Shown here piece after piece: positions 17,569 to 24,960 of a stretch of DNA of 64,000 nt. Within the stretch, counting starts at the first letter, position 1. Each line of letters opens with the position of its first letter. The notes beneath the pieces are model-generated. The model had not been told where the DNA came from and did no database searches. It worked only from the letters and a program-made list of their open reading frames with translations. This stretch comes from Octopus sinensis. Taxonomy: Eukaryota. A program made the translations under genes and the position numbers. Location: assembly GCF_006345805.1 (NCBI RefSeq), contig NC_043008.1, positions 57,288,001-57,352,000 of the forward strand. Reading direction: 5' to 3'.

Positions 17569-17651
17569 ACTTACCATGCAACGAGTTTAATAAATGTTTG
17601 AGTGACCTTAACACCAGCAGATGCATCAAAAGTGCAGCTTCTTTCATCAGA
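17569..17651 (-). pseudogene. GAPDH: 3' half of a GAPDH coding exon 9 copy with intact GTAAGT donor
   Basis: 64/77 nt identical; SDERSCTFDASAGVKVTQTFIKLVAW vs [26 protein letters not shown]; same phase-2 donor. Confidence 0.92.
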
Positions 17652-17670
17652 ATTTCCTTAAGATAAATGA

Positions 17671-18000
17671 CATCAGATTTCTTTAAGATAAATGACAAGG
17701 GGTTTACAGAAACTATAAACAACATCACAGAGAGGCTGTCTCCTTGGGATATGCCTTTGCGATACTGTATTCTATCGGTGATAATACAGTCACTCTTTGT
17801 GTTTAATTTTGAAGCTGGTGGCCCACGATGAAGTCAGGTCAGCTATAGCTTTGACTATTCTCACTGGAACTTTAGTAAGTTGAAGAGTTTCTTGCATCCA
17901 TGAGCGGGGAACAGAGTCAAAGGCTTTCTTGTATTCTAGCCACATTGAAACTAGGTTCCTCCTATGCTCTCGCACTTCTGACATCACAGTTTTGTTGATT
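17671..18000 (-). mobile_element. R4/Dong-type (RLE) LINE, RT motifs 3-4
   Basis: WLEYKKAFDSVP, then after a frameshift RKGISQGDSLSVMLFIVSVNPLSFILKKSD. Confidence 0.85.
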
Positions 18001-18244
18001 AGCAATTGTTCGGCATATCTCCACACATACATATGTATGTATATATGTATGTATGCATGTATGTATGTATATGTATGTATGTATGTATGTATGTATGCAT
18101 GCATGCATGCACATATATATGCATATATATATATATATATATATATATATATATATATATATATATATATATGAGCATGCATGTATGTGCATACGTGTGT
18201 GTATGTGTGTGAGCACGTATATATCTTAGTCATGCACATTGAAA

Positions 18245-18580
18245 GAGAGAGAGAAGAAGAAGAAGAAGAAGAACAAGAAGAACAAGAACAAGAACAAGAA
18301 GAACAAGAAGAACAAGAACAAGAAGAACAAGAAGAACAAGAAGAACAAGAACAAGAACAAGAAGGAGAAGAACAAGAACAAGAACAAGAACAAGGAGGAG
18401 GAGGAGGAGGAGGAGGAGGAGGAGGAAAAGAAGAAGAAGAACAACAACAACAAGGAGAAGAAGAAGAAGAAGAAGAAGAAGAAGAAGAAGAAGAAGAAAA
18501 GAAGAAGAAGAACAACAACAAAAGGAGAAGAAGAAGAAGAAGAAGAAGAAGAAGAAGAAGAAGAAGAAGAAGAAGAAAAA
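18245..18580. repeat. (GAA)n/(GAACAA)n/(GGA)n purine-rich tract
   Basis: Direct reading. Confidence 0.95.
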
Positions 18581-18924
18581 GGTTAGAATGGGAGTGGGAA
18601 AGACACACACTTGCACACGCACACTCTCACACACACTCATACACACACACACACCACACACACATACACTCACAAGTCGTATTACTTCGACTCCATCTCT
18701 CGATGACCTCAGTTATTGTATTAGTTTACTTGTTTAGTGCGACGGAAGAGATCCATAATAAACAGAGAGAAAATTAAGATGGATTATTTTAAGCTAGGCA
18801 CAAATGTAATGCATTGTGACGGAGCTTTTAAACTAGCATGCGTAACACAAACTACATTATCGGTTGAGTCTATTATATACTTAACATATGGGGGTGGCTG
18901 GTTATAGAAATGTTGGCTACTATA

Positions 18925-21253: not shown

Positions 21254-21332
21254 AAAATTTACTTTTATGTCTTTCAGGGTGCCAACCGCCGATTTGTCTG
21301 TTATTTATCTGACATACACGTTGGCTAAAGCG
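21254..21332 (+). pseudogene. GAPDH: GAPDH coding exon 8 copy (79 nt) with flanking intron homology
   Basis: Same length and phase as the real exon; 63/79 nt; KFTFMSFRVPTADLSVIYLTYTLAKA vs [26 protein letters not shown]. Acceptor TTTTATTTGTCCTTTTCAG is identical, and ~150-200 nt of downstream intron still aligns. Confidence 0.93.
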
Positions 21333-21850
21333 GTCGGTCGTTTTATGATTATTTATTGTTATCATGGCAAATGCTTGTGTAAGTACAATAGACTATGTAT
21401 ATCCAGGAAAAATTGAACATACGATCTATTTTTAATTATTATAAAATGTTTTAATTAATAAACAACAATCTCAGTAAAGCATAAATATTAATATAAATTT
21501 TCCCTTTGTTTCATCAATTTGAAACGCCATAGATAACAGCAGTAAATTAACCTATTTGGCACTCATTAATGTAGATATACCACTAATTAAACATCGATTG
21601 GCAGCTGTGTGACATTGACTGATTTGCCTTTAAGTTAGTGGTTCTTAACGAGGATCCACGCGGCCCTTGGAGGGCCACATAAGATTTTGTTAAAACTTAT
21701 GAGCAATAAATTGCTTCCATTTCTACAATCCACAAAATATTTCAACAATTCTTTTTTTAATACAATTCCTAATAATATTTATTTATAAAATAAGGCGGCG
21801 TGCTGCCAGAATTGTCAGCACGCCGGACAAGAGTAATTTTATTCTAATTT

Positions 21851-22412
21851 TATTCAGCTGAATAAAATTACTGCTGTTGTCTGTCAGCAAGAACTTCCGG
21901 CGGTGTCAGCAAGAACTTCCGGCGGTGTATTTGTCGCTGTTATTTATGACAACCCTAAAACATTAACTCTAACCCTAACCCTAAAACCCTAACACCCTAA
22001 CCCTAAAAACCTAATCCTAACCCTAACCCTAAAACCCTAACTCTGACCCAAAACCCTAACCCTAAAACCCCAACACCCTAACCCTAAAACCCTAACCCTA
22101 ATATCTTAAAACCAGTACAAACGCACGAACGATGTCATAAATAACAGTGACAAACGAAAAATACACCGCCGGAAGTTCTTGTTGACAAACAACAGCAGTA
22201 ATTTTATTCAGCTGAATACACGTCATTGATTGGTTGAAATTACCGAAATACGACAACTTTAACGTGAAATAACTTCGTAAATATAAGCTTTTCTCAAAAA
22301 TGCTAAGAGTAAAAGATGTTTTATATGACACATTCTACCAGTGTCCGAAGTTTGAAAGTGTTTAGTTACAAAAAATTATTTTTTAAATCTGTAGGTCAAA
22401 AGGTAAAGATCC
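21851..22412. mobile_element. Foldback/MITE element with (CCCTAA)n-like core
   Basis: Arms 21851-21951 and 22133-22218 are inverted repeats around ~150 bp of degenerate CCCTAA. 22219-22412 matches the MITE at 3056-3340. Confidence 0.75.
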
Positions 22413-22597
22413 GGACAAGATGCTTAGCGGCATTTCGTCCGTCTTTACGCTCTGAGTTGAAATTCCGCCGAAGTCGACTTTGCCTTTTATTCTTTCGGGG
22501 TCGATAAAGTATACATAGCAGTTGAGTACTGGGGGTTGATGTAATCGACTTAACACCCTCCCCTAAAATTTCAGGCCTTGTGCCAAAATTTGAGACT
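22413..22597 (+). mobile_element. SINE family B, 5' truncated, alternative tail
   Basis: Core plus CCCCTAAAATTTCAGGCCTTGTGCCAAAATTTGAGAC. Confidence 0.8.
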
Positions 22598-23280
22598 AAT
22601 ATTTAATTATAAAATATGTATGGTGGTACAATACAGCAAAAATAGGAAACATAGGCGTCTAGAGGCCAAAAATGGTTGAGAAGCACCGTTTGAAGTTAAA
22701 CAGAACCTGCTGGTACTTGAAGCTTTCCTTTCATAGAAAGTCGATGATTTCTTTATAAGCTGAGATTTGATTCTCAATTGCAGCTACTGTGTGTTTTGCG
22801 CATGTGCGAGGTTGTGTGTGTGTGTGTGTGTGTGTGTGTGTGTGTGTGTGTGTGTGTGTGTGTGTGTGTGTGTGTGTGTGTGCGTGTGTGTTGTGTGTGT
22901 GTGTGTGTGTGTGTGTGTTCGTGATTCCTTTCGGAAACATACCTTGGTGTGAAGCTTTTGAATTCTCCGAAACAATGTAATTTGATATTTTACTTTGAGC
23001 CACTAGAAAAACAACAACAACAACAATAAAAAAAAAAGTGTTAGTATTACCTTGTCAGATAAAATCGTTTGTTTCTTTTCAGCATTATTTGAATTAACAC
23101 AAAACATTTTTCTTTTCATGTTTTATGTTTTTCTTTGTAGTTCTATTCTTCTACAAACTTTGTTCATCGTTTTTGAAATTTGAATAAATTCAACCTCTTT
23201 TCACACATATATCGACGAAGTGCCAAGTAGAAAAAAAAGAGAAAAAACGGGCATTTTTTTAATTTCTGCTTCTCTTCCAT

Positions 23281-24960
23281 TTCACTGGTTCACAAGGAAA
23301 CAGAAAAACCAAAATTACACACTGTTTCCTTGTGTATAACTTAAAACTTTATGCAAAGAATATGCATGAGGTGAAAAAGAGTTTTGACCTTGTTGCAACA
23401 TTCTCAAAGGACGTAGAGTTGGAGTTTGGTCAGGATAAATGTTAGTTATATGGTTCTGAAGAGGGGGAAAAACTATAAACCAGACTAAGAACATCTCCGC
23501 CAATGATTTGACTGTTTCCCCTGTATCTGACGAGGAATGTTACAGGTATCTAGGGAGGGATGTAAATATATCTTACAATGGCACCTGTAACAAAACACAT
23601 GTCACTAAATAATATTACAGCCGAATAAAGAAAATTTGAACCTCAGAACTCTTTGCATTCAATAAAACAGTGGCCCACAATGTGTTTGCAGTGCCAGCAC
23701 TCATACCAACATTTGGGCAGCTTAATTGGACGCTTGATGAGATCCGAACCATTGATGTGAAAACCCGAAAAATACTAACAAGCACGCATAATTTCCACAT
23801 TAACAGTGACGTAGACCGCCTCTACCTAAAACGAAAACGAGGCGGCAGAGGCTTAACATCGATCCAAAATGCCTTTGAATGTCGCATGATATCCCTTCGG
23901 AAACATCTTTTAACCACCAAGTGTCGAGGTGCATCCCGTGACCAAGTTTGCATACATGAAGCTGATAACATCATAAGACTGGGAAGACAACTCCTTGAGC
24001 AACACTCTTTGTCTGATAACCTAGAATATATGCCTAAAGAAGTCGCACGACTCTACCACAACATATCATCAGATGAAAGGATGAGCCTATATGAGCAGAA
24101 GACTATGCATGGGTATGTTAGTAGAAAGCTCCGTGATGAGAGTAACATCGATCATCAAAGCAGTTTATCATGGACGAATAGCCAAAATATCACTTCCCAC
24201 TTTGAAAAGTATGCGTTTACAATCCAGGAACAGGAAATATCAACCAAGTACCTGATGCACAAATGGGATAGAGATGCGGGAAAAGCCGTAAAATGTGACA
24301 ACCGATGCAGATTATGTGGAATTCACACTGAAGATATCACCCACATCATAAGCAGGCGTCCGAAAATGTCATCACGGTATTATCTGCCGATGAGACATGA
24401 CGCTGTAGCTAGGACACTATAAGGAAATCCGTTGGAAGGACAATCCCGAGAGCAAAGAAATAAAACCCCACAATATGGTAGAAGCCATAGCCACTCATAA
24501 TGGAAAGGAATACTGGTGGAATGTACCACTGAAGACCTCAATAAAATGTAAGCACAACAGACCTGATATCGTGATTTGGTATAGAGAAGAGAAACTGTGC
24601 ATAGTTGTAGAAATTAGCAGCCCAGCGGAAGTTAACATAAAGCTGAAGATCAGTGAAAAAGAGAACACCTATGCTGAACAATTGAAAAATCTATAGGTAT
24701 TCTATCCAGATTACAAGTTAAGGTTTATACCTGTAATTATTGGAACCCTGGGATATGTAACACACTGCCTAAATGCCAATCTTGAAAAATTAGGCTTCTC
24801 AAAACCAGAAAGAAGAAAGCTAATTCGAAGACTACAGATCCAATCCATCACTGGAACTGTCAAGATCTGTAAAACTTTCCAGAAGTTTAGCACTTAAATA
24901 TATATGAGCATGTCTAGATATGTAACTCTATGCATGAGAATACATACATAAAATATACAA
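23281..24960 (+). mobile_element. R4/Dong-type (RLE) LINE, 3' portion, decayed
   Basis: RT motif 5 region KITHCFLVYNLKLYAK; RLYLKRKRGGRGL; CRLCGIHTEDITHII zinc motif; RHDAVAR; NRPDIVIW...VEIS RLE; PVIIGTLG; stop at 24898; followed by (ATAC)n. Confidence 0.92.

Follow-up and report, generated by a model that had tools for sequence, protein, structure and literature searches.

A probable 5.6-kb inversion that divides a LINE and a GAPDH relic in the Octopus sinensis genome

A segment of about 5.6 kb in intergenic DNA of Octopus sinensis, 18-24 kb downstream of the live GAPDH gene, has very probably been turned around by a real inversion with two breakpoints, which explains most simply the arrangement of two markers, a long interspersed nuclear element (LINE) and a partial relic copy of GAPDH. 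The region was analysed in a window of 64,000 nucleotides (GCA_006345805.1, CM016870.1:57,288,001-57,352,000, plus strand), whose own numbering is used below; the O. sinensis locus retrieved via the longest GAPDH isoform agrees with 31535-64000 at 100% identity. A first-pass annotation of the window had proposed an inversion of ~5.6 kb from these two markers, and this proposal was borne out: the LINE ends lie 5 nt apart when aligned to an unbroken copy of the element, and the GAPDH relic is collinear with the live gene after the flip. The limits of the flipped segment were refined to 17672-23278. Both markers were restored by a flip in silico followed by realignment, the check that the annotation had suggested: the LINE became contiguous, and relic exons 7, 8, and 9 fell into order on the live-GAPDH strand. 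Because the LINE ends abut in opposite orientation and relic exons 7 and 8 face away from exon 9, the locus carries the signature of a two-breakpoint inversion.

The LINE is present as two pieces. The 5' piece, a 5'-truncated reverse transcriptase (RT) that includes the motifs up to QGDSLS/NPLSF, is inverted and occupies 17672-18030 on the minus strand, where the translation from ~18030 down to 17673 reads ...YKKAFDSVP...GISQGDSLSVMLFIVSVNPLSFILKKSD and then stops at the junction. The 3' piece occupies 23279-25225 on the plus strand and comprises RT motif 5 onward, a CCHC motif, a restriction-like endonuclease region, and a 3' untranslated region (UTR) with an internal (ACAT)n tract; its translation reads (H)FTGSQGNRKTKITHCFLVYNLKLYAKN... 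from 23279 and runs onward to ~25225. The LINE ends given previously, 17671 and ~23281, were confirmed and refined to 17673 and 23279. Over the break point, the O. sinensis family protein P0041 reads ...VNSLSFILRKFERYLTGSQGNRNTKI..., its longer reading across the join is ...SFILRKFERYLTGSQGNR..., and the joined LINE translation is covered end to end by proteins of the same family. The reference at the DNA level was L001, an uninterrupted O. sinensis copy of the LINE family that encodes P0041. In the L001 alignment, the minus-strand piece ends at 3197 and the plus-strand piece starts at 3203, with 5 nt (ACGAT) lost and an overlap of 0, which agrees with the earlier description of the halves as consecutive RT motifs 4 and 5 with a few nucleotides missing. 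By a rough estimate, the chance of two independent fragments of a ~4.5-kb LINE abutting within ~6 nt is ~0.3%, and matches to the family elsewhere in the 64 kb amount to one other fragment of 77 bp. A further polarity marker is flipped as well: the microsatellite at the 5' flank of the LINE, (ACAT)n/(AT)n in the LINE sense (18031-18230, minus strand), has its complement in the (ACAT)n tract of the element itself at 24949-25108.

Live GAPDH is encoded on the minus strand. Its coding exons 2-10 were located at 41553-53691 by tblastn with human GAPDH, and coding exon 1 starts at 55417; the spliced product, rebuilt from canonical splice sites, is identical to O. sinensis XP_029643401.1. Two relic exons lie on the plus strand inside the inverted segment: exon 7 at 19720-19833 (blastn 76.5% identity, E 1e-15) and exon 8, which aligns together with its intron flanks over 304 bp, at 21189-21492 (70.7%, E 1e-40). 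A patch of relic intron 8 (21763-21820, plus strand) also aligns and is collinear with live 43498-43440. Exon 9 is represented by its 3' half only, here called 9a, at 17651-17569 on the minus strand (blastn 84.3% identity to live 42851-42933, E 1e-19); 9a lies just outside the inverted segment, starts at TCTGAT, and keeps a GGTAAGT donor. Thus, tblastn and blastn confirmed the placement reported by the first-pass annotation, with exons 7 and 8 on the plus strand inside the interval and exon 9 on the minus strand outside it, and all matching blocks of the relic are collinear with the live gene once the segment is flipped. The retention of intron sequence and exon-intron boundaries implies that the relic is a partial duplicate made at the DNA level rather than a retroposed copy. 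An isolated second fragment, 9b, derives from the same region of exon 9 (17319-17375; 89% identity over 46 bp, live 42865-42910). It shares the minus strand with 9a, from which it lies 194 bp downstream, and is of about the same age as the other relic parts. No flanking homology was detected at 9b, where alignment scores fell below those of shuffled sequence.

The arrangement is shared with Octopus vulgaris, whose genome is described in PMC10700109. The orthologous locus, L004 (GCA_951406725.2, OX597825.1:68,608,814-68,704,059), was fetched via a 75-kb GAPDH gene model and is collinear with window 11776-64000, with a substitution divergence of 2.29% over 24 kb; the aligned blocks begin right after a 100-N gap in the window, at 11776. 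Junction B, at the 23278 end of the segment, falls within one aligned block (window 22859-25044, 96.7%), and junction A, at the 17672 end, falls within another (window 17524-17804, 94.7%). Exon 9a, a 26-bp duplication at junction A, and the LINE end have the same reading in both species. Since both junctions are common to O. sinensis and O. vulgaris, we conclude that the inversion is older than the split of the two species. O. vulgaris also carries an insertion of ~300 bp, absent from O. sinensis, 45 bp past the end of exon 9a (L004 64278-63977, window 17524).

In the LINE sense, junction A reads ...CCTTGTCATTTATCTTAAAGAAATCTGAT / GTCATTTATCTTAAGGAAAT / TCTGATGAAAGAAGC.... Its filler (17646-17671, minus strand), the second of two tandem copies of the 25/26-bp unit GTCATTTATCTTAARGAAAT(T)CTGAT, shares TCTGAT with exon 9 and is identical in sequence in O. 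vulgaris. The 25/26-bp unit thus duplicated spans the join, and its copies differ at two positions. Homology of exon 9 to the live gene starts exactly at TCTGAT (live ...CCTGTCTGATCAAAGG..., position 42933), and the LINE end and exon 9 have TCTG(AT) in common, a microhomology of at most 6 nt. This is the pattern of microhomology-assisted end-joining, which may have been accompanied by a templated insertion or followed by slippage duplication. The loss of LINE sequence at junction B is at most 5-6 nt. The breakpoints, placed by the annotation in exon 9 and in the RT, were found at TCTGAT (live 42933) and between RT motifs 4 and 5, respectively. No inverted repeats were found at 17672 or 23278, and the inverted pair of short interspersed nuclear elements (SINEs) and the microsatellites all lie within the segment; for want of inverted repeats at the breakpoints, an origin by non-allelic homologous recombination between such repeats was rejected. 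A 13-nt match, CCTTGTCATTTAT, between the LINE end and live intron 9 was judged to be due to chance, as a control flank gave equally many 12-mer matches with unrelated positions.

On the GAPDH side of the inversion, at least 99 bp of the expected sequence is absent. The last 725 bp of the inverted segment (22554-23278, plus strand) contain a (TG)n tract, an exon of an O. vulgaris GAPDH isoform (22941-23000, minus strand), and a repeat, U2 (23077-23278, plus strand). Neither the 3' end of live intron 8 nor the 5' half of exon 9 was detected near 23278, where the Smith-Waterman score did not reach that of shuffled sequence. Exon 9 therefore lacks its 5' half, as the first-pass annotation had stated; the deletion at the inversion that it had read from this absence is not required, because an older repeat U adjoins junction B. 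A second copy of this repeat, U1 (16914-17095, plus strand), is 73% identical to U2 over 164 bp, and no copies beyond these two in the window were found in any fetched locus. U2 adjoins junction B, and U1 lies beyond exon 9b; before the inversion, U1 and U2 would have flanked the exon 9 fragments as inverted repeats with ~600 bp between them.

Junction A is longer in O. vulgaris, which has ~424 bp more than O. sinensis (L004 ~63295-63830 compared to window 17672-17804). We designate the LINE breakpoint X, the segment from X+5 to X+297 T, the segment from X-132 to X S1, and the upstream twin of S1 S2. The minus-strand LINE of O. vulgaris is unbroken from its 5' end through X to X+297, and segment T copies the first 292 bp of the plus-strand LINE piece. 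After T, the LINE restarts at X-132 and reaches X (S1, 132 bp), followed by the 26-bp duplicate and exon 9a; the true broken end that matches the plus-strand start is on S1 only. Extensive overlap of the LINE halves, named by the annotation as a finding that would speak against an inversion, is absent in O. sinensis but amounts to 292 bp in O. vulgaris. S1 and S2 differ by 9.5%, and T and the plus-strand piece differ by 7.4-8.0%; these values are 3-4 times the species divergence, which implies that the duplications had occurred before the two species separated. In O. sinensis, the LINE end agrees with S2 at 4 diagnostic 5' sites and with S1 at no fewer than 9 3' sites, with 2 private changes in 128 nt, so that the O. 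sinensis 5' piece is chimeric and S1-like from position 76 on (approximately its last 53 nt). This S2-then-S1 site pattern is the footprint expected of a deletion crossover, and O. sinensis probably lost the ~424 bp when S2 and S1, direct repeats of ~130 bp, recombined. These comparisons make it likely that the S2-T-S1 layout of O. vulgaris is ancestral. Ancestral junction A would then have run, in the LINE sense, from a to X, from X+5 to X+297 (T), from X-132 to X (S1), and into exon 9. Such a layout could have arisen in two ways: the LINE may already have carried a 430-bp tandem duplication when a plain inversion with two breaks cut its second unit at X, or the extra copy may have been made during the rearrangement, via staggered breaks or template switching.

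Several observations weigh against the reading of the locus as an inversion. The overlap of the minus-strand LINE of O. vulgaris with the plus-strand piece by 292 bp means that a plain two-break inversion needs another event. Private substitutions are unequal between the copies, with 23 on S1 plus the plus-strand piece compared to 9 on S2 plus T (p = 0.02), which sits badly with a single element, because duplicates of equal age should match. This asymmetry fits neither origin of the layout cleanly and is unexplained, but we do not hold it against the inversion itself. The left LINE piece differs by ~11% from L001 and the right piece by ~17%, and L001 was the one close reference copy at hand; a second targeted protein search brought up no other close copies from octopuses. 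At junction B, the expected 5' half of exon 9 is absent, and the 725 bp described above have no counterpart in the live gene. Finally, the uninverted state was seen neither as an allele nor in an outgroup. The GAPDH locus of Octopus bimaculoides, L003, runs into an N gap at the equivalent of window 29362, ~6 kb before the relic would be expected; no protein anchor closer to the relic was found, and a protein search for an outgroup locus with the relic-specific C-terminal extension gave no match. The best O. bimaculoides match to the LINE, P0022 (locus L005), was rejected as an outgroup, since it lies on another chromosome and has only transposable element sequence in common with the window. 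Independent contigs were also sought with the 250-aa LINE open reading frame, the open reading frame over junction A, and GAPDH isoform X3, and none was on record.

The inversion, the 292-bp inverted LINE duplication, S1, and the 26-bp duplication might instead have been produced together in one replication-based complex event, through serial template switching or staggered breaks with fill-in, a possibility that we regard as rather doubtful. The course of the O. vulgaris sequence, which runs to X+297, back to X-132, to X, back 25 nt, to X again, and into exon 9 at TCTGAT, is consistent with such an event, as is the lack of inverted repeats at the breakpoints. The staggered-break model predicts inverted duplications at inversion breakpoints (Ranz et al., 2007; PMC1885836); their median length in Drosophila is 321 bp, and the 292-bp LINE duplicate of O. 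vulgaris, present at both ends of the segment in opposite orientation, is within range and resembles them. Unlike in staggered-break inversions, the 132-bp S1 lies between the duplicate and the outer flank, where a pure staggered-break model puts T straight against exon 9 and predicts no S1, and the private divergence of the copies is unequal. An inverted duplicate of the exon 9 side was not found in a comparison next to junction B. Moreover, 23 compared to 9 private changes misfit copies made at one moment, and a prior tandem duplication followed by a plain inversion gives the same layout.

We consider it unlikely that the extra LINE sequence of O. vulgaris is derived and the O. sinensis form ancestral, with T and part of S acquired by ectopic repair or gene conversion from another LINE copy, or with a second LINE of the family inserted next to the first. 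S2 and T do look younger, with the 9 private changes compared to 23, and one site has T in S1 and S2 and C in O. sinensis and L001. In a three-way comparison, private changes numbered 7 in T, 15 in the plus-strand piece, and 27 in L001, so T could stem from a younger copy of the family. The stronger claim that T is far younger than the plus-strand piece, drawn from pairwise distances, was rejected as overstated, as site patterns in the multiple alignment (7 compared to 15) gave p = 0.13. By contrast, an origin by later acquisition requires an in-register import that rejoins at X-132, and at the 4 sites that distinguish S1 from S2 in their 5' parts, all of the changes are on S1 and O. sinensis is identical to S2, which is the pattern of a deletion crossover. 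The S1-S2 and T-plus-strand piece distances, at 3-4 times the species divergence, likewise argue against recent acquisition.

It is very improbable that no inversion took place and that the markers are coincident LINE and GAPDH fragments, or a twin-primed LINE split later by a 5.2-kb insertion. Dong-R4 LINEs are abundant in O. vulgaris (PMC13282606), and the order and orientation of the LINE ends (X to a, then X+5 to the end), together with the small loss where they meet, correspond to the topology of twin-priming 5' inversions. Unlike in such inversions, the pieces here are 5.2 kb apart, with SINEs, microsatellites, and GAPDH relic exons between them; this non-LINE DNA upholds the rejection of twin priming in the first-pass annotation. 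Between the pieces lie exons 7 and 8 from the gene that also supplied exon 9 at the outer junction, in the order and orientation that an inversion predicts, and both the abutment of the ends within 5 nt and the presence of a single other family fragment in the window argue against coincidence. An artefact, in which a contig segment was misoriented in the scaffolded O. sinensis assembly (built from PacBio reads and Hi-C according to Li et al., 2020, as cited in PMC10700109), is virtually excluded, because the only N run in the window (11673-11772, 100 N) is 6 kb from the nearer junction, junction A bears the repair marks of microhomology and local duplication, and both junctions recur base for base in an independent O. 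vulgaris assembly from another individual and species, the comparison that the annotation had recommended.

The order of events under the inversion reading is supported by divergence. Relic-private substitutions occur at 96 of 516 aligned sites (~19%), with similar values over exon 7, exon 8, 9a, and 9b, whereas the older LINE pieces (S1 plus the plus-strand piece) have 23 private changes in 370, or at most ~6%. The relic is equally near to live GAPDH of O. sinensis (10 sites) and of O. bimaculoides (11 sites), which implies that the duplication is older than the split of these species, which differ by 7.6% around GAPDH. The sequence data thus support the order duplication, LINE insertion, inversion, split of O. 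sinensis and O. vulgaris, and last the deletion in O. sinensis; the first three steps in this order had been proposed previously and fit the series ~19% > at most ~6% > 2.3%. A rough calibration, in which a Jukes-Cantor distance of 0.065 corresponds to ~18 million years (PMC13282606), would place the inversion at roughly 17-3 million years ago, an age that is inferred from the calibration and is not a direct measurement.

From sequence and divergence, the following history would account for the locus. An ancient partial GAPDH duplicate, containing exons 7-9 with introns, would have arisen on the strand of the live gene. A 5'-truncated R2/R4/Dong-like LINE would then have inserted on the opposite strand, ~1.7 kb upstream of relic exon 7 and beside an (ACAT)n tract. 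The segment between the break in exon 9 and the break in the RT would next have turned and been rejoined by end-joining. The products of this step can be read directly at the junctions, where, in A, LINE position X adjoins exon 9 via TCTG(AT) with a 26-bp local duplication, and B has lost at most 6 nt of the LINE. The arrangement would have become fixed before the split of O. sinensis and O. vulgaris.

The label R4-type given to the LINE by the annotation is a reasonable one, to judge from motifs read by eye and from matches to R2 structures. The best matches of a full-length relative among solved structures (PDB) are R2 proteins (E 5e-28), and Pfam assigns this relative RVT_1 followed by zf-RVT and no other domain. 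After the RT, the LINE in the window has C..C...H....C and then a (K/R)PD...E...K-like region, as read by eye. By these motifs it resembles Dong/R4 and R2-type LINEs, with an RT followed by CCHC and a putative restriction-like endonuclease, and it has in addition an (ACAT)n tail and a microsatellite flank. In O. vulgaris, Dong-R4 is a major LINE group (PMC13282606). The 3' end of the family (24949-25225; L001 4290-4483) has (ACAT)n inside the 3' UTR, then a conserved stretch of ~120 nt, and last a tail of the (ACAT) type. The same-sense (ACAT)n at the 5' flank (18031-18230) suggests that the element inserted into, or was primed on, that microsatellite.

One annotated GAPDH form of O. vulgaris reaches into the rearranged DNA. 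In the gene model CAI9731263.1 (481 aa), the last GAPDH exon is spliced from an alternative donor, at its stop codon, to three more exons, at L004 58602-58661, 63844-63927, and 85109-85243. The first corresponds to window 22941-23000 (minus strand), within the inverted segment; the second, at window 17574-17656 (minus strand), is the relic half-exon 9a; and the third lies beyond the window. Every splice junction is canonical (GT-AG). For exon 9a, the acceptor (AG, 17658-17657) falls in the LINE-derived duplicate at junction A, and the first extra exon is sense-oriented only through the inversion. Alternative forms in the O. vulgaris annotation were obtained by PASA with Iso-Seq data (PMC10700109). 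It is conceivable, but improbable, that the inversion created new 3' exons of GAPDH by putting 22941-23000, with its strong splice acceptor and donor, in sense for read-through transcripts and by placing an AG, within LINE-derived filler, before 9a. If true, a small inversion would have given birth to 3' exons of a housekeeping gene, and CAI9731263.1 would have gained a new C-terminus of 92 residues.

Several other features occur near the relic and the live gene. A 385-bp segment near the relic (14906-15289) is 97.4% identical, in inverted orientation, to part of live GAPDH intron 6 (45329-45712); it is probably a young transposable element, because it is far more similar than are the relic exons. 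The inverted SINE pair in the segment (18925-19400 and 20718-21117), which is 95-99% complementary in parts with a spacer of ~1.3 kb, encloses relic exon 7 together with a fragment of a mariner-like transposase (20023-20295), and is a possible substrate for a further flip. Sequence downstream of the last GAPDH exon (35953-36207 compared to 40978-41301) recurs 5 kb on in direct orientation, as a single match with 81.6% identity over 179 bp, and may be another duplicated piece of GAPDH flank or a rare repeat.

The rearrangement is of an ordinary kind, lies in non-coding DNA, and disrupts no gene, so its biological weight is modest; inversions of this kind are common. It resembles end-joined small inversions in its two junctions, its markers split in complementary orientations, its microhomology of at most 6 nt, its small local duplication and loss of a few nucleotides, and its breakpoints without inverted repeats. 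It differs from them in the extra 430 bp of LINE at junction A of O. vulgaris and in the absence of at least 99 bp on the GAPDH side. The features of the junctions favour end-joining or template switching over recombination between repeats. Comparison with a sister species allowed a structural inference from a single assembly to be tested, and it exposed a later deletion of 424 bp that simplified the locus in O. sinensis. The locus thus provides a small inversion in a cephalopod genome that is resolved to the base and can be dated against a gene duplication, a LINE insertion, and a speciation.

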